From positions 372,001 through 436,000 of the forward strand of contig NW_021826031.1 of assembly GCF_006345805.1 (NCBI RefSeq): DNA of 64,000 nucleotides, in the 5' to 3' direction. The translations under genes and the position numbers were made by a program. The notes beneath the pieces are model-generated. The model ran no database searches. It was not told the DNA's origin and worked only from the letters and a program-made list of their open reading frames with translations. Of this stretch, positions 7,190-36,600 are shown piece after piece. Within the stretch, counting starts at the first letter, position 1. Each line of letters begins with the position of its first letter. Source of the stretch: Octopus sinensis (Eukaryota).

Positions 7190-8339
7190 TGAGTTTGTGT
7201 GAATTCACTAATCATTTATAGACATTCTTACCAAAAATATATCAATAATTAAAAAAACAAGAACACTTTCAGACAGAGTGAAAGGAATTATAACTGAAGA
7301 CACCAAAGAATTAATCAGTTTTGAACGTTCCTCCCCGCACATCCCTCAGAGAGCTACGATAAAAATAAGAAGATTTTTAACGGGGCGATCGACTTTTATT
7401 TACACAAACAAGGCAATTTACGACGCGGCCACGTAGAATTCATTAACAGTGCACTCGAAAACATGAAAGTACTGATTCTCTTTTAATTCATAGAAATTCG
7501 GAATGGAGCAAGATTTAGATTCATATATTAGAATATTGGAGGTTTTTCCTAAAGGGAAGATGATTGCAGAGACAGCTTTTCAGAGGGAACTAGTCCATTA
7601 CCCTAAACAGCAGCACTGCTGTGGAAACATAATCTATCACATGGAAAAGAACGGTATATGAGCGAGTCTTGACTTTTAAGGAGTCGTTCCCAATGAAAAA
7701 GTCGGCGAAATCATTTCCAGTGTATTCGGGCTCAAATCTTTTGCAATGAAGAGATATTTAAGGGCGATGTATTGGATGCCAAAGTTTAAAGGAATGAACC
7801 CCCACTATGTTCCCCCTCTTCCTAAAGAACACGTCAAATCAGATCACTTCCAGCTCACCTTGGCCAGAGTCGCTCTAAAAAGAATGTCGTTTGACATCGA
7901 AGCAGTTATTTCTTGCCACAAACTAAGGAGTCAGCCAAATTCTCTGTTCATAGTCTCCTCACAAAGTCCACTGCAGAAAGAGCTGATAGAAAAGGCTCCA
8001 GCTTGTTCCCAGTTCTGTATTTCTGGGCCGTTCAAAAGTTTTTTGAGAAAACATATGCTTAGCTATTACGTGTTGGGGTATAGGACTGATGCAACTGGTA
8101 GAGTGGAGAATTCGGACGAAAATTTGTTTAATTTTTACTTTGAAAGTGAAGAAGATAGGAAAAAACTAAAACCTGTAAAAACAATACATGAACAAGATGA
8201 TGAAACAATCCTGGCACTGTGTATTTTGGTAGGAAATGAATTGGATTTTGGATCCACTCTCAGTGGGTGGCTGACCTATTTACAGGAGGAAAATCCAAGT
8301 TTAGTTTCCAGACAAGTGAATATACGTCTGTCTGAATAA
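7190..8339 (+). CDS. ECSIT: ECSIT (mitochondrial complex I assembly / Toll pathway intermediate)
   Basis: Exons encode RRGHVEFINSALENMK, LEVFPKGKM..HYPKQQHC..MEKNG, WMPKFKGMNP and SGPFKSFLRKHMLSYYVL, following the ECSIT motifs RRGHIDFIY, HYPRQQEC, WFTRFKNINP and EGPF. The start is approximate. Confidence 0.85.
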
Positions 8340-8485
8340 AACTAATCTTCCATTGTTGCATCAATAATTTTCAAGCAGAGATTTACAATTTTTTTAATAA
8401 CAACTTTTGTACATAGTCTTGAAATGTTATAAAATCGAGGATAAATTCTTAAAGGAAAATGTTTTTTTAAGTAAGAATTGGGAAT

Positions 8486-8664
8486 GGCAGAGTGTTTGTC
8501 CCCTTGGCTGTTGAGACGTCAGGAATACAGGGGCCTTCTACTCGACTCTACTCCAGCGGATTGGCTCACTAATCGAAAGGGTTACCGGCGACCCGTGTGA
8601 GCACCGGTATTTAACCGAACGAATATCTATAGCCATAATCAGAGGCAGTACTCTGGCTATCTGA
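8486..8664 (+). mobile_element. 5'-truncated CRE-clade 3' fragment
   Basis: Reads FVPLAVETSGIQGPST (frameshift) RIGSLIERVTGDPCEHRYLTERISIAIIRGSTLAI*. Confidence 0.75.
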
Positions 8665-8782
8665 CAATGACGATTTCTCTCTTGTCCTTTTATTAATTTT
8701 GCATTAATAATTAGATAGAAAAGAGTTATTGGCAGGATATATAAAAATAATGTAAAATAAAACTATCCAGGTTAATATATAA

Positions 8783-11248
8783 TCATCTCATCAGTAAAAT
8801 TTCCCCTGAATCAGATGCAACTAAAATAAGATGATGACTCCGAGAAAGAAAAGTAAAACATTTGATATTCCCTTTAAATAAATTGACAGGCAATTCCATC
8901 GGCTGATAGCAACTCTAGAGAAATCAAAAATTTAATTGTACTTTTTTGCCCGTAAACGACCCGTACCACCCAAGACGATGATTTGCCGACAGAGTGACCA
9001 AATCATTATTGTGGACTTCCATCTGAGATATGACATCCTGATGACCTCAAAATATACCAAAGTGTCAAACCACTGAGAATAAAATCTGATTTGACGTGGT
9101 CTTGGTAAACATTCAAACCAATAAGAGGCTTGTCAGAACCAGAAGCCATCAACAATGAAGAAACATTGACCTTCTTTATTTCAAAGGGAGTGTGATATGT
9201 TCCTCCATAATCCTCCCAGAACGAATATCCGTGATGTACAAAAGTCCCGCAGATGAAGAAACAGCGACCCAATTATCAGATGGATCCACAGACACACTAT
9301 TCACAGAACCAGAACTAAAACGGTCGACAAGTCGAAAGAACAAAGAGGGGCTCTTTGCTCGAATGTCATACAAACTAGCACATACAGGAAACATGAAACC
9401 CAATGTTAAGTCGACTGGTAGCCAATAGTATAGTAGACGAGGGAGAATGCAGGGACAATATCAGCGATGTCAAACATGGGATCATAAACCGCACAACTCC
9501 CCCCTGAGAGTAATCCAGTGTCTGGAAAAGTGATTTCACATAAAAAACGTGAAGACTTCCATCACAAGAAACGGCCTGCTCTCTTGACTGTCTTGTCATG
9601 GGAAACACTTAAAATCGATTTTCAGCACCAAGTGCTTGGATTTTGACACCGCTTATTTCGTTAATTTCAAATTAACGGATCAGTAAAAAACTAGGGAATA
9701 CATTCGTCGGGAGATCAGGAATAGAGACGAGACAGTGAGTTGGGATATTCCTTGGGAACCAACCGCTGTCTGGGAATACAGGACACGTTATACCTCACAA
9801 TGGAGCATAGGATGAACTTGGGAGTCCTCCTGGCCATATACATGTAGTATGTAACGTCTGATTGCATCCCAACAATTTGATGAGGCTTATGTTTATTCAC
9901 AGAAAATTCATTTTCGTATACAGTTTTGAAAAATCCATTAAAAGTGACATCCAACTGGTCGTCTCCCTTGCATAATCTGTACGGTACTTTTGTCGAAGTG
10001 GTCGCAGTTTTTTAGAAGATAATTAAAATTAATTAATTTTTTTAGTGAAAAATAGATTATTTAATTTATAACCCTCTATCAATAATTTAAATGGTTATTA
10101 AAATTATTTAAAAATTTATTTAACCAATTTAGTCATTTTTAGTAAAAGTACCATCTGTACTTTGATTTTGTCAGATCTCGCAAATTCCCATCCTCTGTTT
10201 CAAAGTCAGAGACCCACGGAAATATTGGATGGACATGGGCAGATTCCATTTTCCTTCCAGCCATCGAGTTTAGCAACATCAAGTAATCGTAGTTTGACAT
10301 TTTACCACACTGTCAGTCCTTCACGGCGGAATAAAAATTTTTTTTGGGCAAAGTGCCCTCATTGAAATTTTCAATCGGAGAACAAAAGTCTCCTTCATCC
10401 ACGAATTGCGAACTCTCCGCAAAAAAGGCGGAAATGTAAGCCCAAAAGAGGAACTGACGTGAATATCAGAACAAGAAAGGGCAGGTAATTCAAGTCCATT
10501 TTTACTTAAAATCGAATTTAGGTGAAAAGTTGATAAATAAAATAACTCAGCAAAATTCCGCCATTTTTACGGAATTCCGTGGGACAGAATGCAAACATAT
10601 CCTACAGACTTGGATTTCCACGGAGTTCTACAAAAACCTCAAATCCGTCGACCGTGAATTCAAAAATAGAGGGAATTAAACTGCCGGGTAGATAACCTCG
10701 ACATTGCTGAGCGTACAAAGCGAGACTGTTCCTCTAATTTTAATAAACGTGTCCTCAACTGTTGTTGTGGCTTGGGAAGACTTTTCTTTGAGTGCTTTCT
10801 CCAAACCAAAGTGTCTGGAAATGTGAGGACAACTGTCGAGAACTTTTGCATGTCCCTCTGCTGGCTTTCCAAAACTCGTGTCCTCAGCAATTCACTTACG
10901 AAATAGAGTCAGTTGTTGAAGAAACGCGACTTTTTGATTGAGTACAAATTCGTACTTTTCAGATTTTTGAGGTCGTGTTTTAAGGAAAAATGCTCTCAAT
11001 TTTATCGTTTTATCCGCAATGATGGATTCACGGGAATATCCGAATTCTTGTAATATTTCTGTTAAAAATTGCATGTCGAACTTTTCGTTGTTTAATCCTT
11101 TTCTGTCATAAAACGAATATCGGCCTAGGAGATATATTATTGGGGGTGTACTTCGATGTCGAATACTGAAATTTCGCCATTTGATCGTTCTTTGTTCAAA
11201 AATGTTGAATTTGTACTGAATCCACATTTTTGAAGAATTTTCTGACAT
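8783..11248 (-). pseudogene. WDR81: WDR81 (BEACH plus WD40) pseudogene
   Basis: BEACH motifs D*QCGKMSNYDYLMLLNSMAGR..HPIFPWVSDF, LRDLTKSKYRLCKGDDQLDVTF, SDVTYYMYMARRTP..EYPNS and YS*SPDECIP*FFTDP; WD motifs AVSCDGSLHVF and FKGNIKC..LVASDSGEILLMR*. It has at least four in-frame stops, frameshifts, a large deletion between BEACH and WD40, and a Merlin insertion in an exon. Confidence 0.8.
9983..10152. mobile_element. 170-bp Merlin-family MITE
   Basis: Starts with the family TIR ggtacttttgtcgaagtggtcgcag and ends aaaagtacc. It has a perfect 8-bp TSD atctgtac (9975-9982 and 10153-10160). Removing it restores the WDR81 BEACH frame. Confidence 0.9.
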
Positions 11249-11399: not shown

Positions 11400-13157
11400 T
11401 GCTAAACTCGATCCTCATAGATTCATTGCTTAGTAAGAATTTAATGATGACACTTCATTCAACCGGTCACAGATCCCACACCGCACTAGCTTAATTCCAA
11501 AGACTGATTTTTAAATTTTGACCTGATTCCTTTTGGCATGTTGATTTTTATGTTGAAAGAAATCCATACTTTGTCAACCAATGAACACTCAACCATCCCA
11601 GACTAATCGGAATACGGAAGAGAAAAAGGTAAATGAAGTTATAGGAAACTGTCATGGAAGACAAATAACACGTGAGAGCAAGGTTAACTAAGAAAACCAA
11701 AATTTTTGGGTACTTTTGTCGAAGTGGTCGCAGTTTTTTTAGAAGATAATTAAAATTAATTAATTTTTTTAGTGAAAAATAGATTATTTAATTTATAACC
11801 CTCTATCAATAATTTAAATGGTTATTAAAATTATTTAAAAATTTATTTAACCAATTTAGTCATTTTTAGTACGCGGCATCCAAATTCCAGGACTGTAGAA
11901 GGAATTTATGTCTTTTACAATCTGTGCAAAAGATTCCTTATAGTTCTGTATTTGTTTTCGCCACATAAATTCTGAAAAAATAACTAACTAAAAAAACCTG
12001 CGAAATAAGATCCCAGATGATGTCTTACAGCTCCTCTTTGAGCTTTATTCTTGCATTTTGCACTTCCCCACATTCGTTCTACTGTCTGGGTGTGCACTCC
12101 CGTCGTTGGATCCAAAAAAAAAAAATGCACTGCATCCTCCTTACTTATTGGAGCTGTCGGAATTTGATGTTGCATAAGTCCACAACAGAATTTTCCATGT
12201 GACCTATAGTGCCAGTTTATATCAATATTAGGTACATGCTCGCCATAATATTAAAAAAATTAGAAAATAAATTAGTAAAAATTTAATAATATTTTAAATT
12301 ATTGATAGAGCGACTTAAATAAAATATAATATTCCACCTCAAAAATTATTAGATTTTTTAAAAGGCCTAAAAAAACTGCGACCACTTCGACAAAAGTACC
12401 AATTTTTGTGACAGATTGATAGATTTGTGCCTGAAATGAGTAAACTCTGTTTGAGAGTTGGGTCAACGAAAGGGGAACAATATAATCGAAGGAAAAGGCC
12501 ATGCCTTCGAATCTGTAGAAAAAAATGAATAGAGAATCCCGACTTGGTAAAGCACGTAGTAAGGGGTTTAAGGCCTTTCGTTTTGGCTTGAAGAACGGTG
12601 ATGACTGTTCTAGAAAGCCATAGATTTAGGCAGCTCGGAATCCTACGAAGCATGTCGTAGGTTGGTGATTTTTCTGTTTTCGAAGCTAGTTAACTTATTC
12701 TAAGCATGAGGGGGAAAATAAAAGATCTCATTTAACTCCAGAAAGTAGTCGGTGAGGGTTTGTTCCATGCATCTATTGATAATTTGAACTACGTTGGAAA
12801 GGTATAATAAAATAAGTTTTTTTGAATTTCTTTGACTGTCCATAGAAGTACCCAAAAGCGCTCAAAAAGCGTTCAGATTGTTTTGTTTAAAAACAAATTG
12901 TTTCACTTAAGGACAGAAAACAAACACAGGTCAAAATCGAAAACCGGAAGCTACGACCTAATAGGAGTCGTTTTCCATGGATATATCTGGACCGATTTTG
13001 AATTGACGGCAATCGATGTTTTGAGTGTAAGATTGCAGTCATTAATGAAAAAACTTAATGATATAACTTTATTCCTGAACGAAATTTCTAGGCAACCAAC
13101 ATAAGAAGGCAGAGAAGAGCATTTGTAGGACGAGAGAGTCCTAAGTTTCAGTGCCAT
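11400..13157 (-). pseudogene. TUBGCP2 (gamma-tubulin complex component 2)-like decayed copy
   Basis: The minus strand encodes GMAFSFDYIVPLSL..NR (GCP2: EAFSFDYIVKWPLSLIINR), then YQ, and across the Merlin insertion VECSL..KVWIS (GCP2: VERQLCSVWIS). Stops and deletions are present; outer boundaries are uncertain. Confidence 0.55.
11709..12400 (-). mobile_element. Internally deleted Merlin (IS1595/IS1016-like) DNA transposon
   Basis: About 33-bp TIRs beginning ggtacttttgtcgaagtggtcgcag and an 8-bp TSD aatttttg (11701-11708, 12401-12408). Transposase C-terminal remnant FLDPTTGVHTQTVERMWGSAK..HLGSYF at 11984-12175. Confidence 0.9.
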
Positions 13158-19540: not shown

Positions 19541-20386
19541 ATGTTAATTTACCACTAAATCAAATATTAAATTGAATAATTTTAAATTAATGTCGCTATT
19601 TTGTTTAAAATGGACAAATATTTTATAAATGGAGTATTTTTATTCAGGATTTCTGTAAACAGAGTCGACTTAAATCAATTAGTTTAATAGATAAAGAATA
19701 TTTGAATAACGAATGGTTTTTAAGATTGGCTTGTCTACGAATTTTTGTTTAAACTGTAAATTGTATTTTTCGGATTTAAAAAATCATCTAATCAGTCAAA
19801 ACATGGTCCAACGATTATATTTTCAGATTATGTTTAGGGGTGATTCATAACGCATTGATTTGCAGTTGTAGTCCACCAAAAACTACAAATAAAATACCCC
19901 GCCCGACCTTATATGAGAGGGAGACGTCCGGTGGCAAGAATACTGTTTCTATCAAGAAACAGATTCACGACCCGAGAAAACTATGTTAAATCTGCTTGTT
20001 TCCGAATGTTGGGAAAACTCTCCAGAATGCTCAAAGTGAAAGTCGATTCTTCATTTGTGTTTCAATCGTCGTGTTGTCCAATTGGTGTGCGAGTTCACTA
20101 AAGAAACGGGCTAAGGACCCTCTTTTGGCCCAAAGGGAAAACTGATCTGCTATTACGCCTTCATGATGGCTAATGCGAGCATAAAAACAAAACCTTTTGC
20201 ACAAAAATAGCGGAATTTGAAATATTTAATTTGAACTAATTTATTTTTAATGAATTTCATAAATCTATATTGGGGTCGAAATCTAATTTTTGTTAGTTGA
20301 AAATGAACAAATCATTGAAAATTAAAATTGCTTAAAAAATTTTGAAAAATATTCAGCCAGTTTTTTAATTGAAAATGTCAAAATTT

Positions 20387-20491
20387 CACGATCCTCAGGA
20401 GGTGGACTGGTCATTGCAACGGTTCTCAATCGCCGTTATCCGGGGAAACAGTTTGGCAATCCGCCAGGCTGCTGCCCTTCCCTTCGATTAA
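20387..20491 (+). mobile_element. ~105-bp extreme 5'-truncated CRE copy, close to the intact element's family
   Basis: Shares ccggggaaacagtttggcaatccgccaggct (31 nt, identical) and flanking similarity with the 3' end of ORF 53878-56799. Confidence 0.8.
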
Positions 20492-21769
20492 TCGATATTA
20501 ATTGATAACGAATCTTTCATTTCAGCCAGTTATTATTTTCGAAATAATATTACATTTTTTCGGAGTATTGAGATCATTTTGAGTCTTAAATCATTCATTT
20601 TAATTTAAAAATATTTCGGGTTTCAAAGATTTTTTGCTTTTTATGTGACTTACACTATACTATTTTTGCCGAATAATTTTCAGTCTTTTTAAAAATGGAA
20701 TCCAATCTTATATCTAAACTTTAGCCCTATGTTTGAATAGCTAAACTACCTATTTTATTTTTATGGATTATAAAAATTTTTTGATATGACTCACGATTGA
20801 AATTTTTTGTTGAATAAAATCGTTAACATCAAAAATTTCGACATGTAGTATCCAATAAACTTTACAGACAATTCTTGCAGTTGATTTTTTTATTAAGGGT
20901 ATGAATTTAGGCTATTTTTATTTTTGGGTCAATGGCCTGATTAAAATTCAAATTATCTATCCTGAATAGAAATGAACTCAGCTTGAATATCGAAAGTGTT
21001 ATTTTAATCCAGAAAAAATGTTAGATTAAAGAATAGGAATCCCGACTATCACAGACTTTTATCAAAAAACATGTAATCCATGTCCGTTTTGCAGCGAGCA
21101 CAGTCCGTGGCCATTCTCGTCAAAGACTCTAAATCGTCATATTGTTCTTTAATGACTTCGGAAAGAAAATTTTCGAACTAAACTCATTATTAACAATCCA
21201 ACGTCGGTGTCCTTTTTTTCTGCAGCAAGTGAACAAAAATACTCTATTTTTTCCGTAATTTGTTTTTCAGTATTTAATGCAAAACGAATTATTTCGTCGG
21301 TTTTTGTCGAATTTACGTGCATGGGCTTTTCTAAGTTATGAATAATACTTCGATTGGTGTATAAATGACGTTTCCTCCTCGTCTTTGTTGGTATTGAATG
21401 AATTTTCTGGCATGTGACAATTCCTCGTCTGCCATTTTGTCGAAGAACTTTGCCAGTTTAGGAAGATTTACAGTTGTTTGACTAAAATGAGTGGCCTAAA
21501 TTTTTTATAATAAAAGATTCTACTATGTTCAAGTAAGTGTAAAAAGCTCTTAGTTCATAATTAATTTGAATGTTTATCTGGTCCTCAATTTCAGAAGAGA
21601 AATTAAATTTTCCATCAATTGGACTGCTCATTGGCGGTGCACTAGTAGAAAATGTGTTAATGTAAAACTATTGCGTCTATCATAAAATGGTTATCCATTA
21701 TCAAACAAAATTATTTTTCGTAAAATTAATAACTTTATTTTAAAGTTCTAATATTTCATTTTCAAAATT

Positions 21770-22620
21770 ACTATTCTACCACTCGGAGGATTTTTTATGG
21801 AGCGACTGGTTAACATATTTTGGGGTAGGACATTCCAAGGTAATTCAGGAGGCCATTATCCGATACATTTAACGTGCTCAAAAGTCTTTGCCGAGAAGCC
21901 GAATTCTTTTTAGATTTATCTTTAACTTCATTTTCATTCCACGAGGGAATAACAGGCTTAAATGAAATTGGTTCCTCCGGGAAATCAACATAATGCGGGA
22001 CTGCTGAATGACGCATCCAATTCTCTGAGTCGTCGTGTAGACTCCGAAAATGACTTTTTACTATTTTCTCCACAGGAGAAATGTCGGTAAAATCCATTTT
22101 GGCGGGAACAGTCAATTTTTGGTTGATTTGAGTTTTGTTTGGAGTAACAGTTTTTTGGAAATTTTCCATTTTGACAGACGGGATGTGTGGTTTTGTGGAC
22201 CAAATTCTCCTTCATTGTCTCTCCAGTGTTATTTTGAGCATTTTTTGCTCCTTCTGACTTGACGGCACGAATTTGGTGAATGTTTTGAGGTCTATTAGGA
22301 GGGTCGAGATATCCAGTAAGGTAGTTACTGATCGTACTGTCGTAAATCCTCCCGCTCTTTTGGATAATTGGTTTGAAAGTTGCATTCGATTGTTTTTGAT
22401 CAAGTCTGTTTATGTGAGGAATTTCAATGCATCTTTTTTCTATTGCTATTTCACGAGGTTTTAGCACATTTTGCGATTTTATTTTCTTGTTTTTAGGAAT
22501 CTTTTCGAAGATTTTTGTACCTGGAAAGTGTTTATTTGGTTGTTCTATAATGCATCGTGGATTGCTTCGATAGGATAAATTGGATAAATCTAAGGGCGGA
22601 ACAAATACCTTTGGTTTCAT
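21770..22620 (-). CDS. Lineage-specific protein, copy 1; frameshifted relative to copy 2
   Basis: ORFs 21985-22620 and 21810-22169 together match the single ORF 29967-30812. The differences are 1-bp homopolymer indels, so this may be a pseudogene or a consensus error. Confidence 0.5.
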
Positions 22621-22977
22621 AACACTCGTTTCCTTGGTTTTTTAATTTTTCTTCATTTTAAAATTAGCAATTTAAACCATTTATTATAAACAAAAAATAT
22701 CGTTTATTTTTCGAAAGATTAAGTGATCATTGCCTTTTGTTGCGGCTGTAGACATCGGCACTTTGTGGACGACGTCACGGTCAGGAATGGTATATGCTTC
22801 CGACTCGGTGACTCACTGTAGGCTGTGTAGGAGAATCAGGAATGAACTGAGTTAAGTGAAAGAAGTCGTATTAGGATTCGGAAATTTTCATTTTGTTTGA
22901 AACTTTTTCAGTCTTTTCAATACGCTGGATTGATGAGAGTAGGGAGTTATTTTATTTAAGGTTGGAAATTACTATTA

Positions 22978-25694
22978 CAGTGAAAACTCTCGAATCCGCC
23001 GCTTCTCGAATCCGCTTGTTTTAATCAAAAATTTGAAATTTCCTATGAATGATTCTTGAATCCGCTTGTTTCTCGAATCCGCTCCTCAAGTATTATGAAA
23101 AATAATTTTTTTATCTAATTGTAAGTTAAATTAATTAACATTTTAAAATTCTCATTACACGTAAATTGTATTTTTGTGATGCGTCGCTGTGTTAGACTTT
23201 CTATCAACGAAAAAATTTCGGTACTTTTGTCGAAGTGGTCGCAGTTTTTTTAGAAGATAATTAAAATTAATTAATTTTTTTAGTGAAAAATAGATTATTT
23301 AATTTATAACCCTCTATCAATATTTAAAGGTTATTAAAATTATTTAAAAATTATTTAACCAATTTAGTCATTTTAGTACGCGGCATCCAAATTCCAGGAC
23401 GTAGAAGAATTTATTTCTTTTACAATCTGTGCAAAACATTCCTTATAGTTCTGTATTTGTTTTCGCCACATAAATTCTGAAAAAATAACGGTACTTTTGT
23501 CGAAGTGGTCGCAGTTTTTTTAGAAGATAATTAAAATTAATTAATTTTTTTAGTGAAAAATAATTATTTAATTTATAACCCTTATCATAATTTAAATGGT
23601 TATTAAAATTATTTAAAAATTTATTTAACCAATTTAGTCATTTTAGTACGCGGCATCCAAATTCCAGACTGTAGAAGGAATTTATGTCTTTTACAATCTG
23701 TGCAAAACATTCCTTATAGTTCTGTATTTGTTTTCGCCACATAAATTCTGAAAAAATAACGGTACTTTTGTCGAAGTGGTCGCAGTTTTTTTAGAAGATA
23801 ATAAAAATTAATTAATTTTTTTAGTGAAAAATAGATTATTTAATTTATAACCCTCTATCAATAATTTAAATGGTTATTAAAATTATTTAAAAATTTATTA
23901 AACCATTTAGTCATTTTTAGTACGCGGCATCCAAATTCCAGGACTGTAGAAGGAATTTATTTTCAAAATTATTAGATTTTTTAAAAGGCCTAAAAAAAAC
24001 TGCGACCACTTCGACAAAAGTACCAAATTTCTATACTACGTTATATTTCTGAAAACCCATTCGTTTCTGCACCTCAAATTTCCAGGATTTTTTCTTCACG
24101 GTTAAAAAAGAAAATTTCTCCGAGAACTATAAACGACCTTAAATCAAAAACGGACCTTTTGAATAGGACTGACATCAAAAATTAAACCTAACGAGAATTC
24201 CAAACTCAAATTTAATGAAATTGATGTAGCGATGATAACATGGATTAACTTAATGGAATCTAGTGGAGCAATTCTATCAGATTCGATGTTAATTGCAAAA
24301 GCTCTTAAGTTTGGAAAAATTTTCCAGAATTTAAAGCAAGTCGTGGGTGTCTAGAAAAGTTTAAATTACGAAATGGTATCAAGTTAAGAAATTTCACGGA
24401 GACAGTGGATCAGTAAATCATGATGAAAAATCTATTACTGATTTTAATGAACAATGAGTTTAAAAATTGAACAATATGGATTGGACAATGTTTATAATGC
24501 AGATGAAACTGGTGTTTTTTACAAGGCGATTCCTTCCAAAAGTGTATGTACCAAATCACGGCCTGGAATAAAGTTGTCGAAGGATCGATTTTCGTTACTA
24601 TTATGCGCAATTGTTCTGGTTCCGATAAAAGAAGCCTGTGATGATAGGAAGATTCAAAAGTCCAAGGTGTTTTAAGAATTTCAACATTGGAAAATATGTT
24701 ACCTACACCCATTCAAATAAGGCATGGATGAGCCGTGAAATTTTTAACAAGTGGCTCAGTGATTTTGATTGTGAACTTGCGAAGAAAAAAAGAAAAATTC
24801 TACTTGTAATAGATCAATGTTCATCTCATCAAATTATTGTCACGTTAAACTCAATTGAAATTCTTTTTTTGCCTTCTAGAACATCCTCGCTCTTGCAACC
24901 AATGGATCAAGGAATCATAAAATGCTTTAAAGCCGAATTTACCAATTTGAAAATAAATGATATAATCGAAAAGGTTGAGGCAGGGAAAAATTGTCAGAAT
25001 GCAATTAATGGAATCACCCTTAAAACTGCTGCGACATTAACATTCTTCGCTTGGAATAAAGTTACTCCTACGACCATCAAAAATTGTTTCCGTCATGCAC
25101 AATGGATAAAATGTGAAACAATCACAATCAACAGTGAATCTAAGAACTACGAAAATAATTATGAAGAAATAATTAAGAAATTTCAAATTGACGATCCAAT
25201 ATCTTATAGTGAATTTGTTGATTACGGATATACTGAAAATGAAGAGCTAATCGAATTTTTAGACAAATCTGAACAAGCTGGTACATTACAGTCAAAAAAA
25301 AGTTCAATCAGTTAGTGATTTTATTTAATAATTATAGTTAGGAAACAATTATTCAAGAGGAATCAAATGCGAAAAAAGTTGATCTCTCAGAAGCCTTCAG
25401 AGCTCTAGAGATTATTAAATTAAAACTTATGCTTCTCAGGTAAATGCAGATATAGATGATCATGAAAATATTATGCGAATTGGGGAAATGTTAAGAAAAT
25501 CAATTAAAAAAATAAAATTTCTGATTTTTTTGAATATAAATAATTTTATGTATTCAGTCATTTGTATATAAAAAGAAATACTTAATCTATATTGTAAGTT
25601 CATGTTTCAACTATAAAATATTATTTAAATTGCCTCTCGAATCCGCCGATTTTTTGGTCGGTCCCAAAATCGGCGGATTCGAGAGGTTTTACTG
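22978..25694 (+). mobile_element. pogo/Tigger DNA transposon 1 (CENP-B HTH plus DDE_1), defective
   Basis: About 24-bp TIRs (cagtgaaaactctcgaatccgccg and cggcggattcgagaggttttactg) with a TA TSD. The empty site is visible in duplication copy 2 (ttactatta/atttc near 31168). Transposase motifs RLSINEK, FKASRG, VYNADETGVFYK and LQPMDQGII. Confidence 0.95.
23220..24024. mobile_element. Merlin element with three tandem ~270-bp left arms, nested in pogo 1
   Basis: The TIR starts at 23220, 23490 and 23761; a single right TIR ends at 24024. aaatttc flanks both sides (7 of 8 bp TSD). It splits the transposase HTH (RLSINEKI/SILRY). Confidence 0.9.
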
Positions 25695-26267
25695 TAATTT
25701 CTTTCCACCCATTGGAATCAAGGATGGGCAGTGCTCATGTTCATCCTGATATTATTTTCATTCACCTTGACCAATTATCAGTAATTGAAAAGAATTTCGG
25801 ACTTCGCTGATTGCTATGCTAATAAATCTTATTTCCAATCCACTCACATTAGTCCACCCAATTTTGCTTTTTCTTGTTTCTACGTACTTTTTATGTTATC
25901 TCAGTTGTTAATAATTTACAAATAGGCCGCTTTGTCATCTGAAGGATGAATCAATATCTCAATGGTGATGTGTTAACACGTGATCGAGTTATCTGTCATA
26001 AAATTGTACATGCAGGTTGATTGCGGAGACAAACATGTTCTCAAATACGATTCCACCTTGTTCAGTCGTGTAGCAGATATTTATTGTTTTGAAAGAAATG
26101 AACTGAGATCGGAGAAAAATATTGAGTGATATCTTATGGAGATTAACCTTAGTCAAAGACAAAAGCAGAAAATTAGTCTGTGACAACCTGTATACAATAA
26201 TGCAGATTTATATTTCCTTGATGTACACACTAATGTCGATTCCAATCTTAGAGTGCAGTTTTTTACT

Positions 26268-28852
26268 TTATAATTTTTTTTTGGTAAAATAACAAGTAAA
26301 ATAGAGAAGTTAACTAATTTAGATGAGTCGCCGAGCGGATGGACAGACAATTTCCGCGTAATATCGCGAACGATATCCGCTGAAAAAGCCAGCTCGTTTC
26401 GCGACTGTCGTGACTCCTCCTCGAGATGATTAAACCAATCTCTGAGAGGAGTTGGAGGGCTTTGGGTCCAATTACCCCACTGGTCTCGAAAGCCAGGGGA
26501 ATGAAGCAGCAGGTATCGGTCAAAGAGGCATATTTTGCAGTTTTCCTAGATTCGGCAAGGGCAGATGCAGATCCAGGACGAGAAGCGGAGTCAACCAACG
26601 AAGATGAGAAAATGAGTCTACGCAGGTAACATCCCACACGAGTGCCATTCCCTTCCTGAACGGGAATAAGGTCGACCCGTCAGGGCGTTTTCTATCTCCA
26701 CGGTCTAGTCCTATCGGTTCTAGAAATCCAGCGGCGTCAAGCGCGCGCTTCACAACGTTATTCAATGAGGCGTGCCTGGGGATCCTGCCGGCACTGAGGC
26801 GACAAGAGAGAGGGTGTAAACCTCTCCTGTCAATGAGTTGTCCACATCTGCAATGGTGCGGCTGGCAAATCTCTATGCCAAGCCGTAAACAGATTCCGAT
26901 GCGGACAGATTCGTCGTCCAGCAACATTCCAGCAGAGAAAATCGGCAAAGCGTCAAGCCAATCGGCCGAGTGGGGTTGACAGGCACAATTGATGCTTGCC
27001 AACTGAAATTGGTCAGCACGTAGGCGGATATCTTCGAGTACATTGGAACAATGTATATCATCCCAGTTCTTTTGACCTGAAGGGACGTCCGGGATTTTAA
27101 GCCCACGAGAAATCCACATGTTGACACCCGCCGTATATTCCAACAACTCGGGCTGTTCAGGGGAGGGGAAGAGAACAGAGTTGAAGGAACTAGCAGAGGC
27201 AGACAACGAGGAAAGGTAACATGGGAGGGATAAATCAGCACAAGAACGAATGCCGATGCCCCCGTAGCGAATAGGTAAATTAACCCGTCGCATGTCTGAA
27301 GGTTTGAATTTGATATTTACGAGAAGCTCAAGAGCTTTGGAGACCATGTTGTCGAGACGAGTGATTTTGTTCGAGAAAGCAGGGTGATGAGCGCATGAGA
27401 TAAGTTAGCTTCGGTATAAAGAGATAGTTCTTGAGCAAGAAAAGGCCCAAATGGGATTCAAGTTTGGAAATGCGGGAGATTAGAGTTTCCAATTCTTCGA
27501 GCCTGTCACATAAAGCCTTCTTAGCAGCCTTGCTATTGATTGAAGAACCCAGAATGATAAGGTCATCAAGCTGGGTGATGCCCAGGCCTTCAATATGGTG
27601 AGATAAGGTGGAAAAAATAAGTTTGAATTCCGAAGGGCTCGCAGACAAGCATATCAGCTCGGATTTGGATCCATTCAAAGCGAGCCCAATGGAGGCAAAA
27701 CCAGAAATAATTTTTTCTATATCATTCCTGACGGTCTCCAAAGCCCCGCCGAGAGTAACATCATCGAGGTACCAAATGTTTACCTCAGAGGACAATTGGC
27801 GGGCAATGTGATCAACACCGAGAGAGAATAAAAGGGGCCCAAGAGGGTCGCCTTGTTGAATACCAGTTTCGGACATAATAACATTGTCGCCAAACAAGAG
27901 ACAGCTGGGGGAGGCGTAAAACAGATGGACGATCGGGTATAAGGCAGGGAAACAACATCGGACAGTTTCAAGGATATGATCGCGCCGAATCGAGTTAAAC
28001 GCGTTTTTGACATCAATTTTAAGGAGGAATGGGATTTCAATACATTTTGCAGAAGAAAGCTGCCGTATGCCATGGGCGGCTGCTTCGCAGGCTCCTTTCA
28101 CGCCCACGCCCAGTTGAATTGGCATAAGCTTAGCACTTGCTTCCGGAACCACTGATTGACAAATAATTTTAGCAGCAAGGCTTCTGAAGATGTTGCCCAC
28201 AGCGATAGGCCGTACACCACCATCACTTTTGTTAAGAGCAGTCAGATTTGCGGAAAAGAGTACGTCCCTAGCGAAAGGAGGGATCGTACCAGAGATGATT
28301 CTTGAGCAGAGGGAAGTGATGGCCAACAATAAGCGTCTTCCACCCTCTGCAGTCACAGGGGAAATCAGATCTTTTATATGAATCGGTTTCAAGCCATCGA
28401 TACCCCCACTGCTACTGAATGGGAAAGAGCTGAGGGCGGCAGTTACTTCCGTCGAAGAGACGGGATATATAGAATGGGAATCAGTGACAAGATCTGGGAT
28501 TTCAGATAGATCATCCGGGGCACCGGAGTGTTTAGAGCGCAATTGGTCGAGGATTTTATCGGAAGGGGGGGCAATTGTGGTGTTCGAGGAAGTGACACGT
28601 ACTGCACTCCGAACGTCGCCTTGCATAAGCTTGCTGCGAACCATTCGAGAAATGTCTTGAGTGTTCCGAATTGGACGAGGGAGCCTTTCAGCAGCATGAA
28701 GAGAAAAATAACTGATATCAAATTCTGAATTGTTGAAAAACTCGCAGTTTGTTTTAATTTGCTGCGAGACGGACAAGCGGTCACCACGAAGAGTGCCGTT
28801 TAAAGGGCTGCCCAGACAGACAGGGACAAATGAGAGAAACTTGAGCCAATCG
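26268..28852 (-). mobile_element. 5'-truncated CRE-clade non-LTR retrotransposon (RT plus RLE), frameshifted
   Basis: Motifs RPIAVGNIFR, GIQQGDPLGP, WYLDD, CRCG..HPLSC and RPDG..WDVT..AVETSG. There is an A9 tract at the 3' end (T-run 26274-26282). Coding similarity (DWLKFLSF) runs right up to 28852. Confidence 0.92.
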
Positions 28853-31739
28853 CACTATACTATCTTTGCCGAACAATTTTCAGTCTTTTTAAAAATGGAA
28901 TCCAATCTTATATCTAAACTTTAGCCCTATGTTTGAATAGCTAAACTACCTATTTTATTTTTATGGATTATAAAAATTTTTTGTTGAATAAAATCGTTTT
29001 TGAATAAAATCGTTAACATCAAAAATTTCGACATGTAGTATCCAATAAACTTTACAGACAATTCTTGCAGTTGATTTTTGTATTAAGGGTATGAATTTAG
29101 GCTATTTTTATTTTTGGGTCAATGGCCTGATTAAAATTCAAATTATCTATCCTGAATAGAAATGAACTCAGCTTGAATATCGAAAGTGTTATTTTAATCC
29201 AGAAAAAATGTTAGATTAAAGAATAGGAATCCCGACTATCACAGACTTTTATCAAAAAACATGTAATCCATGTCCGTTTTGCAGCGAGCACAGTCCGTGG
29301 CCATTCTCGTCAAAGACTCTAAATCGTCATATTGTTCTTTAATGACTTCGGAAAGAAAATTTTCGAACTAAACTCATTATTAACAATCCAACGTCGGTGT
29401 CCTTTTTTTCTGCAGCAAGTGAACAAAAATACTCTATTTTTTCCGTAATTTGTTTTTCAGTATTTAATGCAAAACGAATTATTTCGTCGGTTTTTGTCGA
29501 ATTTACGTGCATGGGCTTTTCTAAGTTATGAATAATACTTCGATTGGTGTATAAATGACGTTTCCTCCTCGTCTTTGTTGGTATTGAATGAATTTTCTGG
29601 CATGTGACAATTCCTCGTCTGCCATTTTGTCGAAGAACTTTGCCAGTTTAGGAAGATTTACAGTTGTTTGACTAAAATGAGTGGCCTAAATTTTTTATAA
29701 TAAAAGATTCTACTATGTTCAAGTAAGTGTAAAAAGCTCTTAGTTCATAATTAATTTGAATGTTTATCTGGTCCTCAATTTCAGAAGAGAAATTAAATTT
29801 TCCATCAATTGGACTGCTCATTGGCGGTGCACTAGTAGAAAATGTGTTAATGTAAAACTATTGCGTCTATCATAAAAATGGTTATCCATTATCAAACAAA
29901 ATTATTTTTCGTAAAATTAATAACTTTATTTTAAAGTTCTAATATTTCATTTTCAAAATTACTATTCTACCACTCGGAGGATTTTTTATGGAGCGACTGG
30001 TTAACATATTTTGGGGTAGGACATTCCCAAGGTAATTCAGGAGGCCATTTATCCGATACATTTAACGTGCTCAAAAGTCTTTGCCGAGAAGCCGAATTCT
30101 TTTTAGATTTATCTTTAACTTCATTTTCATTCCACGAGGGAATAACAGGCTTAAATGAAATTGGTTCCTCCGGGAAATCAACATAATGCGGGACTGCTGA
30201 ATGACGCATCCAATTCTCTGAGTCGTCGTGTAGACTCCGAAAATGACTTTTTACTATTTTCTCCACAGGAGAAATGTCGGTAAAATCCATTTTGGCGGGA
30301 ACAGTCAATTTTTGGTTGATTTGAGTTTTGTTTGGAGTAACAGTTTTTTGGAAATTTTCCATTTTGACAGACGGGATGTGTGGTTTGTGGACCAAATTCT
30401 CCTTCATTGTCTCTCCAGTGTTATTTTGAGCATTTTTTGCTCCTTCTGACTTGACGGCACGAATTTGGTGAATGTTTTGAGGTCTATTAGGAGGGTCGAG
30501 ATATCCAGTAAGGTAGTTACTGATCGTACTGTCGTAAATCCTCCCGCTCTTTTGGATAATTGGTTTGAAAGTTGCATTCGATTGTTTTTGATCAAGTCTG
30601 TTTATGTGAGGAATTTCAATGCATCTTTTTTCTATTGCTATTTCACGAGGTTTTAGCACATTTTGCGATTTTATTTTCTTGTTTTTAGGAATCTTTTCGA
30701 AGATTTTTGTACCTGGAAAGTGTTTATTTGGTTGTTCTATAATGCATCGTGGATTGCTTCGATAGGATAAATTGGATAAATCTAAGGGCGGAACAAATAC
30801 CTTTGGTTTCATAACACTCGTTTCCTTGGTTTTTTAATTTTTCTTCATTTTAAAATTAGCAATTTAAACCATTTATTATAAACAAAAAATATCGTTTATT
30901 TTTCGAAAGATTAAGTGATCATTGCCTTTTGTTGCGGCTGTAGACATCGGCACTTTGTGGACGACGTCACGGTCAGGAATGGTATATGCTTCCGACTCGG
31001 TGACTCACTGTAGGCTGTGTAGGAGAATCAGGAATGAACTGAGTTAAGTGAAAGAAGTCGTATTAGGATTCGGAAATTTTCATTTTGTTTGAAACTTTTT
31101 CAGTCTTTTCAATACGCTGGATTGATGAGAGTAGGGAGTTATTTTATTTAAGGTTGGAAATTACTATTAATTTCTTTCCACCCATTGGAATCAAGGATGG
31201 GCAGTGCTCATGTTCATGCTGATATTATTTTCATTCACCTTGACCAATTATCAGTAATTGAAAAGAATTTCTGACTTCGCTGGTTGCTGTGCTAATAAAT
31301 CTTATTTCCAATTCACTCACATTAGTCCACCCAATTTTGCTTTTTCCTTTTTCTACGTACTTTTTATGTTGCCTCGGTTGTTAACAACTTACAAATAGGC
31401 CCATAGTCATCTGAAGGATGAATCAATATCTCAATGGTGATGTGTTAACACGTGATCGAGTTATCTGCCATAAAATTGTACATGCAGGTTGATTGCGGAG
31501 ACAAACATGTTCTCAAATACGATTCCATCTTGTTCAGTCGTGTAGCAGATATTTATTGTTTTGAAAGAAATGAACTGAGATCGGAGAAAAATATTGAGTG
31601 ATATCTTATGGAGATTAACCTTAGTCAAAGACAACAGCAGAAAATTAGTCTATGACAACCTGTATACAATAATGCAGATTTATATTTCCTTGATGTACAC
31701 ACTAATGTTGATTCCAATCTTAGAATGCAGTTTTTTACT
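28853..31739. repeat. Copy 2 of the ~2.9 kb direct duplication, without the pogo
   Basis: Direct sequence comparison with 20653-26267. Confidence 0.95.
29967..30812 (-). CDS. Lineage-specific basic protein, copy 2; 281-aa exon, probably with further exons toward ~29000
   Basis: An uninterrupted ATG-initiated ORF of 281 aa in AT-rich DNA, with no recognisable domain. Confidence 0.55.
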   Translation of the reverse strand: MKPKVFVPPLDLSNLSYRSNPRCIIEQPNKHFPGTKIFEKIPKNKKIKSQNVLKPREIAIEKRCIEIPHINRLDQKQSNATFKPIIQKSGRIYDSTISNYLTGYLDPPNRPQNIHQIRAVKSEGAKNAQNNTGETMKENLVHKPHIPSVKMENFQKTVTPNKTQINQKLTVPAKMDFTDISPVEKIVKSHFRSLHDDSENWMRHSAVPHYVDFPEEPISFKPVIPSWNENEVKDKSKKNSASRQRLLSTLNVSDKWPPELPWECPTPKYVNQSLHKKSSEW

Positions 31740-33623: not shown

Positions 33624-36600
33624 ATGATTGATACAAACCCAAACATCGACTTTATCGTTGACTCATCAGGATCTCTAAACCTTCCTGCACTCGACGCAGT
33701 AGTAACCTCCCTATACAACGATAGCCCAGACAAAGTAACATCCACACTAATAAACTAGCAAATGCTTGCAGCCAAGGTCCTCGACTGTGTCCTCCAACAT
33801 CCTACCGCTTGGAGAAACGTGGATTCAGTCCTGGGCAGTTCTGCCTCTACAAATACGAAATATTTTGCCCTTCAAATGCTGGAAGAGAGTGTCAAACACA
33901 AATGGAAGTCTTTTGGGACGGAAGCACAGCTCCAGCTAAGGAAATTCATTTTGGGCCTCGTTCTTCAGGAATCAAAACTAGAAAACACCGTTTATGTCGA
34001 TAAATTGAACTTGGTGCTCGTCCAGGTTCGAAATTTGTAGGAAATTTGCAGATCCTTAAACATGAGTGGCCAGAACGGTGGCCTGGGTTTGTGACAGACC
34101 TGATTTCGGTGAGTGTGCAGGACAAGGCGAGGTGTCTCAACACAATAAAGATATTTTCTCTCCTAAGTGAAGAGATTATGTCAGCCCGTTCTCTCACACA
34201 AGTCAGAATAAGGCATATGAAAGACAAATTGAGTTCAAAAGTGTGGGCAATCATAGATTTGTGTCGTTTTATTATGGTTGTTTGATTGTTGTCATTTTTG
34301 TAGGAAAGGTCAGACCAGTCTTCGTTGTTGGTGGAGACTTTGAAGACTTTAAAGTGTTTTGTGACGTGGGTTCCGTTGAATATGTTCCTCGAGTCGGGTT
34401 TGGTGGAGAATTTGTGTGCGGAGTATTTGACGGTGCCTGAATTGAGGAACGGAGCACTGGCATGTCTCACGGAGGTGGTGAGTGGTGATATCGGGGACTA
34501 TGTGGTCAGGATATACGAAAGGGTGATTGAGACCGTCAAAGTGGTAGTTTTCCATAATTTGAGGAAGTAGTTGATCCCCATGGGCATTGATATCCGTACG
34601 GCCTATTCGGAAGGAGGCCACAATGACAGGATATATGTGCAGAATCTGAATTTGTTTCTAACGACTGTTTTGTCGAAGCATATGAGCAGACTGAATGGTG
34701 GAGTGGAGGGGATTCGTTATTTGTTGTTGATATCCCGTGTGGAGGATAAGGAAGTGTTCAGAGTGTCCGTTGAATTTTGGAGTCAGTACGTGTCGGAGGT
34801 GTACGGAGGGAGAGAAAGAGCGCCCGACTGTTTGAATGAACTGAGAATAATAATGATCACCCGAATGGCCCGACCTGAGGAAGTGTTGGTGGTCGAGTTG
34901 GAGGATTCGACTGTAGTGCGGGAGTATATAAAGGACACGGAGTCTGTCACTCTGTACAAGATGATGAGAGAGGTGTTGATCTACCTGACCCACCTCGATT
35001 ATAATGCTACATTGGAATTGATGGTGGAGAGACTGTCCTCTCACCAAGGGGAGTATGGAGTAGTCCACTCCACCACTGACTTGAGCACGACTTGTTGGGC
35101 CATCGGGTCGATTAGTGGCACATTGGTGGAGGATGATGAAAAGAGATTCATCGTGACTGTCATCAAGAGTCTCCTTTCTTTATGTGAGAGTAACCACAAC
35201 AAGAACACAAAGGCCATCCTGGCCGCCAACATAATGTACATTGTCGCACAGTATCCACGTTTCTTGCGTGGGCATTGGAGATTCCTAAAGACGGTGGTTT
35301 ACAAGTTATTTGAGTTTATGCACGGTAAGTGTGTTGGCTGATTGTAGAAATGCACGAGGGAGTGAGGGACATGGCTTGTGACACATTCTACAAATTGGTT
35401 CAGAGGTGTCGGGAAAAGTTTGTTCAGTTGCAGCAAGGACAGTCTGTCCGATTTGTGTTCGAGATTATAAGCAATATGAGTTCGATTGTGAATGATCTGG
35501 CACAGCAACAACTTCTTGTGTTTTATGAGGCTGTGGCCTTTATTGCCAAGCCTGAGCAGTGTTCGATGGGTGTGTCCTTGATTAACAAACTAATGGATTA
35601 TCCCAATAGTTGTTGGAATATTATGTTTGGGAGTATGAACACTGCACAACTCATCAGAATTGTCAGAATCAACATTAGTGTGTGTAAACAGGCTGGAAAT
35701 CACTTTGAAGTGCAGGTTGTCGATTTTTTTGAATGTTTTAGATTGATTTAATTTTGCCTGATTTGATGCGTATATTTGGGCAGTACCAACCGACAATGGA
35801 CTCCCAGTCGGGTATATTGGTGGGGGAGGCACTCCGTTTGGTGTCCACATATTTGGAAGTGTGCAATAACTCTCAATATGTTTTGAGCAATATTGTTCCC
35901 CCTCTCATGTCGACAGTTCTTCCCCATTATTCTGTCCATCATTCCCATCCCGAAGTGATACATTTGATGGCCTCATTGATTGCCTGTCTTAGAGTAGTTC
36001 CTTTATTTTAATTTAAGGAATCCTCCCGGCCTCATTTGTATACTATATTTGGGTCTATTCTGACTGCCACACTGCAAGTGATCAGTGGGGACTTTTCCAG
36101 CTACCCTGAGTATAGAACAGAGTTTGCCGACTTTATATTGTCATGTCTTCGCAACTGTCTGTCTGGAATGATGGAGTTGAGTGAGGACAACCTGGGGATG
36201 ACTATGGACACGATAATGTGGATAGTTCAACACCCAGTTCATGCAGTGTCAGTCAGAGGATTTGACTGTCTGAATGTGCTATTTGGAGGAAAGTTAAAAT
36301 CACATGACATGGGGAAATTCAATGTATTTGTAAAAAAGTACTACATGACGACACTTCAGCATGTTCTCGTCTTAATGTCTGACCCATTGAATACGTCAGG
36401 TATGCACTGCTCTCTATTTTGTAGGAGGAATTAAACACTATTCTCATTTCTTGTCCACTCTTATGGTCTTGGCTGAAGAAATGTCGGAGTCGATTGGTGG
36501 TCAGCCAGATAATGTCAAGTTTGTGTTCGACAGTCTGGTCCATATGATGTCGACCAACAATCCCAATTTCAATATGTATTTGATTGTTGGGTGATCGAGT

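Follow-up and report, generated by a model that had tools for sequence, protein, structure and literature searches.

How a single retrotransposon copy came to lie between two direct copies of a gene-bearing unit, abutting both without any intervening base (26267/26268 and 28852/28853), is the question raised by this locus. The window examined, the whole stretch of 64 kb (64,000 nucleotides), includes all the features listed in the table. The order target-element-target, which was proposed in the original prediction as the geometry of a target-site duplication (TSD), holds at single-base resolution. As the origin of this arrangement we favor, at a rough probability of 0.58, one retrotransposition-coupled event, which would have generated a TSD of 2.9 kb with the element in between.

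Features of the duplicated locus and of related elements in the window
Feature	Position	Strand	Remarks
Copy 1 of the unit, part A	20653-22977		counterpart in copy 2, 28853-31169
Copy 1 of the unit, part B	25697-26267		counterpart in copy 2, 31170-31739
Copy 2 of the unit	28853-31739		2887 bp, no interruption
Non-LTR retrotransposon, 5'-truncated, with RT and predicted CCHC/restriction-like endonuclease	26268-28852	-	by Pfam, sibling alignment and motif reading
Pogo/Tigger-like DNA transposon	22978-25694	+	2717 bp; 24-bp TIRs CAGTGAAAACTCTCGAATCCGCCG; DDE_1 ORFs
Ferritin gene, copy 1	21049-21631	-	within 21040-21631, identical base for base, introns included, to 29230-29821 of copy 2
Ferritin gene, copy 2	29239-29821	-	168 aa, four exons
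Orphan ORF, copy 1	21810-22620	-	split by three 1-bp homopolymer indels
Orphan ORF, copy 2	29967-30812	-	281 aa, intact
CRE-like short 3' fragment	20365-20521	+	candidate TSD of 11 bp, TTCAGCCAGTT; lies beyond the left end of copy 1, at a distance of about 130 bp
Intact full-length sibling	53802-56842	+	973-aa ORF with PHD, RT and CCHC/RLE; candidate 13-bp duplication TTTTATTCAAAAA

The duplicated unit was delimited by self-BLAST together with a repeat finder. Part A of copy 1 is 99.1% identical to its counterpart over 2328 alignment columns, the right-hand homology (25689-26267 against 31161-31739) shows 96.0% identity, and no further match to either copy was detected by self-BLAST within the 64-kb window. 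The left edge of homology, 20653/28853, is marked by the sequence cactatactat, preceded by tta and tcg, respectively, and the right edge, 26267/31739, by gttttttact, followed by tta and att, respectively. The duplication flanking the retrotransposon, the end of homology at 26267/31739 and the start of copy 2 directly after the element at 28853 had all been predicted, and each proved exact. The expected copy length of about 2.9 kb was found for copy 2, but copy 1 extends over 5.6 kb due to the DNA transposon inside it.

Each unit carries not one host gene, as was originally supposed, but two, ferritin and an orphan ORF. The ferritin was identified by Pfam (PF00210, Ferritin; 1.2e-26, profile positions 2-141 of 142) and by end-to-end alignment with solved invertebrate ferritins (7e-23), in which the ferroxidase-site residues can be seen (E, Y, E-E-x-x-H, E and Q). 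Its introns in copy 2, all of the GT..AG type, are located at 29713-29686, 29566-29544 and 29443-29419. For the 281-aa ORF, no homologue was detected in an index of 5.8 billion proteins or when 1.84 billion representatives were scanned exhaustively with HMMER. The indels that split this ORF in copy 1 (T4 against T3 at 22191, C2 against C3, and T2 against T3) are possibly consensus errors, because the ORF shows no substitutions. The neighboring host genes, ECSIT and a coiled-coil gene on the left and CRM1 and ARID on the right, are all read through; the CRM1 exon gave no protein match above 51% identity, and an exact 38-mer from ferritin was absent from metagenome contigs. The two-gene content, together with the transposon in copy 1 and the uneven divergence between the copies, had been overlooked in the original prediction.

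The interruption of copy 1 is a pogo-like transposon (Pfam DDE_1, 1.7e-30) with an internal 271-bp tandem repeat (23209-23960). It is flanked by a TA duplication (22976-77 and 25695-96), and copy 2 retains its precise empty site at 31168-69; the transposon either entered copy 1 after the duplication or is polymorphic. The two copies differ by about 1% overall, but the differences are distributed unevenly. Divergence from copy 2 is about 3.4% in the outer block 20653-20890 and 3.5% in the outer block 25697-26267 (20 substitutions and a single 1-bp indel relative to 31170-31739), whereas the central block of 2087 bp (20891-22977) is free of substitutions and shows four 1-bp homopolymer indels only (Fisher p = 3e-14 for the zero-substitution central block against outer blocks of about 3.5%). 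This unevenness points to an older duplication, which may have been homogenized later by gene conversion. The equal divergence of the outer blocks fits a single date of duplication, and the zero-substitution block stops exactly at the transposon heterology, as would a conversion tract. Purifying selection was rejected as the cause of the zero-substitution block, because the block holds about 700 bp of non-coding DNA as well as introns. The copies differ by six 1-bp indels in all, four of which fall within short homopolymers in the block that is identical apart from them; these four look like consensus errors, in a stretch that is hard to assemble or polish.

The same pattern bears on an artefact of assembly, which we consider unlikely. 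In this case, the locus would be single-copy and heterozygous or polymorphic, and contigs of two alleles would have been joined without a gap, the first carrying the pogo-like transposon and an ordinary retrotransposon insertion at 26267 and ending at the far repeat edge, the second starting by chance at the equivalent of 20653. The flush geometry is reproduced exactly by such a join, since homology starts with the second contig and stops at the insertion, and the divergence of about 1% with the clean presence or absence of the transposon resembles two haplotypes; however, the matching 3.4% and 3.5% of the outer blocks would be a coincidence between alleles. The concentration of 1-bp homopolymer indels in the duplicated block is in agreement with a faulty join, but the window includes no Ns, and the sequence quality is unchanged across the join. 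If the host is a dicyemid, as we infer, the published assembly was made from pooled animals with 1.24% heterozygosity, and short-read and PacBio assemblies were merged, the further steps being scaffolding, closure of gaps and merging of haplotypes (PMC6736024). A graph assembler, however, would normally collapse the identical 2.1-kb block and use it once, while an overlap-based assembler would be without a read path from the 5' end of the element to the start of the unit. The host genes on both sides (ECSIT, coiled-coil, CRM1 and ARID) read through with only canonical introns of 19-31 nt and without frameshift, and the flanking models, which also include the LRR gene, need a frameshift on neither side, the models being intron-aware so that spurious tiny introns could mask frameshifts.

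The retrotransposon between the copies is 2585 bp in length. Its RT domain was detected by Pfam (RVT_1, 4e-15, 27328-28776 on the minus strand), with 397 RT homologues at E<=1e-10, and the element shares 45-46% amino acid identity with the intact 973-aa sibling in the same window. C-terminal to the RT and within the same ORF, the region 26520-27347 of the minus strand reads CRCGQLIDRRGLHPLSC ... RH ... KRPDG ... VWDVTC, including CCHC and PD...D motifs that align at 46% identity with those of the intact sibling. On this motif reading of the nuclease, made alongside the sibling alignment, the element is assigned to the RLE-type non-LTR retrotransposons, and is called CRE-like by likeness: as in CRE1/CRE2, SLACS and CZAR, a single ORF carries the RT followed by the CCHC/restriction-like endonuclease.

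The two ends of the element are different in nature. At the copy 1 junction, the stop codon (26314-16) is followed by a 3' UTR of 46 nt, with the terminus ACC-A9-TTATAA at 26268. The predicted A-tract directly following 26267 is indeed present, the plus-strand T-run starting there being the A9 tract of the element; as a tail, however, it is not pure, since TTATAA comes after A9. At the copy 2 junction, the minus-strand frame is open and homologous to its relatives up to 28848-28851, in agreement with the prediction that the coding sequence extends to 28852. The truncation point corresponds to residue 118 of the intact sibling and to about residue 142 of three other relatives. The copy lacks its 5' UTR and about 120-140 residues of the N-terminus. 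Truncation at the 5' end is the usual state of LINE copies. Frameshifts are located near 27372-27376 and near 26600-26607. An LTR-like structure was rejected, since what lies between the copies is a non-LTR element possessing its own 3' end, and such repeats are lacking in the intact sibling. Also rejected were 5' or 3' transduction and a chimeric retrocopy of a host transcript: no A-tract exists at 28852/28853, and copy 2 keeps all three ferritin introns and is collinear with copy 1.

For comparison, at least eight CRE-like copies were identified in the 64-kb window, at eight unrelated and varied unique sites. These eight share a C-terminal/3' end but differ in the point of 5' truncation, carry no LTRs or TIRs, and belong to different families. 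The intact sibling provided the standard for the order of domains, the length of the 3' UTR and the usual size of a TSD; against solved R2 proteins it gave a weak RT match (E of about 1e-8 over the RT core), indicating its distance from R2. The 3' UTRs of the siblings are roughly 40-50 nt, and candidate TSDs of 10-13 bp were found for four of them, whereas no short TSD of its own is present at the element between the copies. None of the siblings has flanking repeats long enough for detection by self-BLAST of the window. A kilobase-scale duplication accompanies none of the seven other copies, and thus one of eight overall, making the copy at 26268-28852 exceptional. The classical CRE members are specific to spliced-leader genes, whereas the sites here are eight unrelated unique ones without a small-RNA gene (target specificity is not a formal criterion of the clade). 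Site-specific targeting of a small-RNA gene was rejected, as neither Rfam families nor tRNA genes were found in the window. The closest relative in Octopus sinensis is without kilobase flanking repeats, an observation of little weight as it concerns one locus of a family 59% identical.

The density of these copies is relevant to non-allelic recombination, a standard origin of tandem duplications between dispersed repeats. Two independent insertions of the same family and in the same orientation, at the two edges of the unit on homologues, might have recombined by a crossover within the elements, giving unit, hybrid element and unit with element-free outer flanks. One CRE-like fragment indeed lies close to the left edge, but on the opposite strand. 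The eight copies come from different families, and self-BLAST detected no DNA-level relative of the copy at 26268-28852 on the outer flanks or elsewhere in the window; after the usual intrachromosomal exchange, elements would be expected on those flanks. Since three events are required, namely two insertions placed precisely at the two edges of the unit and a subsequent crossover, this origin appears improbable.

Insertion and duplication in one step is the most economical reading because of the canonical 3' terminus at one junction, the truncation of the ORF at the other and the lack of a 10-13 bp duplication; this combination of A-tract end, 5' truncation and no separate short TSD bears the hallmarks of retrotransposition. 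The one-step part of the mechanism originally proposed is thereby retained, while a second-strand nick 2.9 kb away is not separable from replication- or repair-based variants. The order of events might be as follows. The CRE-like element would have been inserted by target-primed reverse transcription in the spacer downstream of the LRR gene, with the first nick in the plus strand between the bases that are now 31739 and 31740. Reverse transcription would start at the A-rich 3' end of the element and halt or be interrupted within the ORF. The new copy would then be joined by its 5' end 2887 bp away (now 20652/20653), unlike the 10-13 bp of the siblings, the likely cause being a remote nick, a broken or stalled replication fork, or the sister chromatid. 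The intervening 2.9 kb would be copied by fill-in or break-induced synthesis, yielding unit, element and unit, and doubling the two-gene cassette of orphan ORF and ferritin at once. Afterwards, the copies would have diverged to about 3.5%, the pogo-like transposon would have landed in copy 1, and gene conversion would have re-homogenized a 2.1-kb block with both genes, halting at the transposon.

Two other routes can be judged from the same junctions. The unit might have been duplicated in tandem by any route, and the retrotransposon inserted later, exactly at the junction between copy 1 and copy 2. Insertions are tolerated in the spacer that separates the ferritin 3' end from the upstream region of the next copy, and a later arrival of the element is compatible with the data, but one particular phosphodiester bond had to be hit within about 1.3 kb of permissive spacer, and the insertion had to leave neither a 10-13 bp duplication, as in the siblings, nor a deletion; this succession of unrelated steps is very improbable. 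Even less credible is template switching of the FoSTeS/MMBIR type, in which the duplication would be accompanied by filler copied from a distant DNA copy of the element, with no retrotransposition. Events of this type are known to leave templated insertions at the junctions of duplications, but here one end of the filler lies within a few bases of the canonical 3' terminus and A-tract of the element; this is expected of an RNA-derived copy, whereas a random piece templated by DNA would be unlikely to end there.

By analogy with L1 and Dualen, the mechanism proposed here has direct precedent, and its description as an under-described route was overstated, since kilobase-scale TSDs of LINEs have been published for both. 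Tandem duplications of 1-10 kb by L1 are "regarded as large TSDs" (bioRxiv 10.1101/2024.12.14.628481), large TSDs are described for NER-deficient cells, duplicated exons being mentioned explicitly (PMC5223499), and one L1-bridged duplication reaches 22.6 Mb (PMC7058536). As at this locus, the two units of a direct tandem duplication meet at a polyadenylated, usually 5'-truncated LINE copy. L1 carries an APE-type endonuclease, however, while that of the present element is of the RLE type, and the L1 cases are somatic or experimental, mostly in repair-deficient or tumor cells, while the present case comes from a germline assembly, is old enough for 3.5% divergence and duplicates intact genes. 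In mutation-accumulation lines of Chlamydomonas reinhardtii, heritable de novo insertions of Dualen-4b_cRei show a median duplication of 900 bp, and more than half carry duplications over 50 bp (PMC9977147). The Dualen insertions are likewise flanked on both sides by duplicated target, but long duplications are routine for Dualen-4b and exceptional here (one of eight copies). The authors suggest that the long duplications result from the dual nuclease of Dualen, which has an RLE as well as an APE (PMC9977147); the present element shows RLE only. R9 of bdelloid rotifers, likewise a non-LTR element of the RLE type, makes an unusually long TSD of 126 bp (as cited in PMC9977147 and PMC3636483). 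R9 is rDNA-specific and this length is fixed for the family, whereas the duplication here is a one-off and about 23 times longer. Insertions of the CRE clade produce TSDs, indicating a second nick downstream of the first (PMC3636483).

If real, the locus shows that whole functional genes were duplicated in the germline by a LINE insertion itself, and that the product was retained in evolution. Earlier kilobase-scale TSDs of LINEs come mainly from L1, in somatic or experimental settings, and from new mutations caused by a single Dualen family of an alga, and the phenomenon would be extended to an RLE-only element and to a very reduced animal genome, in which each gene gain is conspicuous. It would also be a dated example, with 3.5% divergence, then transposon insertion and then gene conversion. 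To the full proposition, that an RLE-only CRE-like LINE made a germline TSD of about 2.9 kb in a compact animal genome with tiny introns (probably of a dicyemid), and in one step gave a tandem of a complete, promoter-bearing gene pair (ferritin and orphan ORF) since evolving in concert, we assign an even chance. A genome-wide screen for LINE copies with flanking direct repeats of at least 100 bp is suggested for estimation of the retrotransposon-driven share of tandem gene duplication. If an artefact, the locus is a useful warning that a heterozygous TE insertion combined with a contig join mimics the same geometry exactly. As a minor feature of the unit, the 10-nt motif TCCAATCTTA occurs near both of its ends, probably by chance, being offset by 48 and 17 nt from the boundaries.

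Self-comparison of the window identified 20653-22977 as a direct repeat of 28853-31169 (99.1% identity) and 25689-26267 as a direct repeat of 31161-31739 (96.0% identity), and no third match to either copy was detected elsewhere in the 64 kb. Base-by-base alignment placed the outer homology limits at 20653/28853 and 26267/31739. The downstream copy (copy 2) is an uninterrupted 2887 bp, the upstream copy (copy 1) is split by a transposon, and a CRE-like retrotransposon lies between the two. The duplicated unit starts 250 bp past the stop of an upstream LRR gene and extends 386 bp past the ferritin stop, indicating that the unit is a self-contained two-gene cassette. Both genes, an orphan ORF and a complete ferritin gene, are on the minus strand, and the original prediction of one whole gene within the duplication was thus correct, even understated. 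A 10-nt motif, TCCAATCTTA, is present at 28901-28910 and 31713-31722, and also at 20701-20710 and 26241-26250, lying within the unit at 48 nt from its left end and 17 nt from its right end; since it is offset from the junctions, it is probably there by chance and not as recombination microhomology.

Features of the duplicated unit, its inserts and the CRE-like copies in the window
Feature	Coordinates	Length	Strand	Description
Left outer block, copy 1	20653-20890	238 bp		8 substitutions and a small repeat-length indel, about 3.4%
Identical block, copy 1	20891-22977	2087 bp		0 substitutions
Right outer block, copy 1	25697-26267	571 bp		20 substitutions, 3.5%
Orphan ORF, copy 1	21810-22620		-	broken by three 1-bp length changes
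Orphan ORF, copy 2	30812-29967		-	281 aa
Ferritin gene, copy 2	ATG at 29821, stop ends 29239		-	four exons, reconstructed gene model
Pogo/Tigger-type DNA transposon	22978-25694	2717 bp		insert splitting copy 1
RT/RLE element	26268-28852	2585 bp	-	RVT_1 4e-15
Apparently intact full-length CRE-like element	53802-56842		+	973-aa ORF: PHD finger, RT, CCHC/RLE
Six further CRE-like fragments	8431-8667, 20381-20482, 45144-45619, 58667-58942, 60579-60641, 61389-62021			mostly 3' ends

The 281-aa ORF, in which K, P, N and S are abundant, had no homologue among 5.8 billion indexed proteins or 1.84 billion representatives, exhaustively scanned. An open frame of this length is far beyond what chance would give at about 34% G+C, and the gene is either restricted to its lineage or evolving very fast. 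The ferritin gene contains three GT..AG introns (28, 23 and 25 nt), and its 168-aa product covers the whole Pfam Ferritin profile (1.2e-26) and can be aligned over its full length with invertebrate ferritins of solved structure. A stretch of 592 nt including the entire ferritin gene with its introns is identical between the two copies.

The insert in copy 1, absent from the original prediction, is an ordinary DNA transposon of the pogo/Tigger type that invaded this copy alone: its terminal inverted repeats measure 24 bp (CAGTGAAAACTCTCGAATCCGCCG), TA is duplicated on either side, it has ORFs for a DDE_1 transposase (Pfam 1.7e-30), and the exact empty TA site is found in copy 2 at 31168-69. Within this transposon, a 271-bp tandem repeat (2.8 copies) was detected at 23209-23960; the repeat recurs in the window at two places with 95-99% identity and as an inverted copy of about 78% (9981-10144, 11695-11984, 12265-12400), and could represent a satellite or a MITE-like module that this transposon family carries or gave rise to.

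The differences between the copies are strongly clustered along the alignment (0/2087 vs 20/570 substitutions, p = 3e-14 by Fisher's test), and the end of the identical block coincides exactly with the transposon insertion. Equal divergence of the outer blocks, with a central identical tract at the heterology, would be expected from one older duplication followed by recent gene conversion. Within the identical block, the copies differ only at four homopolymer runs (2-5 bases), each by 1 bp in length, and three of these changes disrupt the orphan ORF in copy 1. Four indels without a single substitution make an unnatural mutation spectrum, and these would most simply be consensus errors in a sequence whose two-fold presence makes polishing difficult.

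The retrotransposon lying between copies 1 and 2 is clearly of the RLE type: a CCHC and a PD...D nuclease motif, 'CRCGQLIDRRGLHPLSC...KRPDG...VWDVTC', were read directly from its translation C-terminal to the RT. Its relationship to solved R2 proteins is distant, and the spliced-leader specificity typical of classical CRE members is absent from it. Its three ORF pieces are collinear with the intact sibling ORF (53878-56799; 45-46% identity); the reading frame shifts twice, near 27372-76 and near 26600-07, and is free of in-frame stops. Beyond the stop codon at 26314-16 lie 46 nt that finish with ACC-A9-TTATAA at 26268. This length is close to that of the 3' UTRs in three sibling copies (roughly 40-50 nt), indicating that the element meets copy 1 with its genuine 3' terminus. 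Towards copy 2, the frame stays open to 28851 and homology with relatives reaches 28848-28851, indicating that the element is truncated inside its ORF, at the point equivalent to residue 118 in the intact sibling and to about residue 142 in three other relatives. Template switching, with the element as filler at the junction, is highly improbable because one end is the exact 3' terminus of the element.

By a protein-level scan, at least eight CRE-like copies were detected in the window, mostly short 3' fragments, and the six further fragments represent several diverged families. Candidate TSDs of 10-13 bp were found for four sibling copies (AATAAAACTA, TTCAGCCAGTT, TTTTATTCAAAAA and AAAATATTGATT), including 10-12 bp for three of the fragments and 13 bp (TTTTATTCAAAAA) for the intact sibling. 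The fragment at 8431-8667 lies shortly after the stop codon of ECSIT, and the candidate TSD of this fragment, from 8335, overlaps the stop. None of the other CRE-like copies had flanking repeats of sufficient length to be picked up by self-BLAST of the window. The element at 26268-28852 is without a short duplication, the 2.9-kb unit being its sole flanking repeat. The intact sibling, with neither stops nor frameshifts in its ORF and with UTRs of 76 nt (5') and 43 nt (3'), may still be active, and the A-run that follows it could belong to the target DNA and not be a tail. A 22-nt reverse-complement copy of the final CRE-like ORF codons (acagtttggcaatccgccaggc) is located at 57139-57160, some 280 bp beyond the full-length element.

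The most economical reading of the order unit, element, unit is a single retrotransposition-coupled event (probability about 0.58). The first strand would be nicked at 31739|31740, priming would take place on the A-rich 3' end of the element, cDNA synthesis would remain incomplete, and the 5' end would be attached 2887 bp away with synthesis over the interval. The one-step, insertion-coupled duplication of the original prediction is thus retained; its second nick stands beside a broken fork or a sister chromatid as alternatives for the distal end, which cannot be told apart from the sequence. Insertion of the element at the junction of a pre-existing duplication is quite unlikely, since it must have hit a single bond, leaving neither duplication nor deletion. 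A crossover between two same-family insertions on different homologues is slightly less unlikely; it needs same-family copies, and a DNA-level relative of the element is absent from the window. Both schemes require more coincidences than the one-step event.

The main rival, itself doubtful, is a false join, in which the contig of one allele, carrying a normal insertion at 26267 and stopping at the far edge of the repeat, was concatenated with the contig of the other allele from the equivalent of 20653. Such a concatenation gives exactly the observed layout, and both the overall divergence of about 1% and the presence or absence of the transposon would then be allelic. However, the window is without Ns, a graph assembler would use the 2.1-kb identical block once, and no path of reads would lead an overlap assembler from the 5' end of the element into the beginning of the unit. 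The join also leaves sequence quality unchanged: the genes to its left (ECSIT and a coiled-coil gene) and to its right (CRM1 and ARID) can all be read through canonical tiny introns, free of frameshifts.

The description of the one-step event as an under-described route, proposed originally, is too strong, because kilobase-scale duplications beside LINE insertions are already established (PMC5223499, PMC7058536, PMC9977147). TSDs of more than 100 bp made up less than 10% of L1 insertions recovered in HeLa cells and most of those in NER-deficient cells, and according to the authors large TSDs can duplicate exons and may recombine later (PMC5223499). In PCAWG, a 22.6-Mb tandem duplication bridged by L1 was explained via sister-chromatid break invasion (PMC7058536). 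New Dualen-4b insertions in mutation-accumulation lines of Chlamydomonas were flanked by duplications of more than 50 bp in over half of the cases (median 900 bp); the earlier record TSD for an RLE element was 126 bp, for rotifer R9 (PMC9977147). CRE and R4 elements yield duplications, not deletions (PMC3636483). Additions over these cases would be an RLE-only element, an animal germline, retention to 3.5% divergence and the duplication of complete genes.

The host genes are metazoan (ECSIT, ETS, ARID1/Osa and CRM1), with GT..AG introns of 19-31 nt (e.g. 29713-29686, 7646-7672 and 35325-35347). The host proteins are very divergent, the best database identity of a conserved CRM1 exon being 51%, and the G+C of the window is about 36%. 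Together, the tiny introns, divergent proteins and G+C would suit a strongly reduced animal genome of the dicyemid kind. For comparison, published values for Dicyema japonicum are 36.7% G+C, an average intron length of 38 bp, a repeat content of 49% and a heterozygosity of 1.24% (PMC6736024). The RT of the element is 57-59% identical to two Octopus sinensis proteins (P0001 and P0002), above the best value for the CRM1 exon; if the host genome is that of an octopus parasite, this would hint at an old TE exchange between host and parasite. At the DNA level, the match to the Octopus sinensis locus of its closest relative (L001) is patchy, with only about 76% identity. Elsewhere in the window are a separate RT ORF (40-1029, plus strand) sharing about 25% identity with the RTs of the CRE-like copies, another DDE_1 transposase ORF, unrelated to the first (43126-43701, plus strand), and a 126-bp tandem duplication (96.8%) at 42068-42320.
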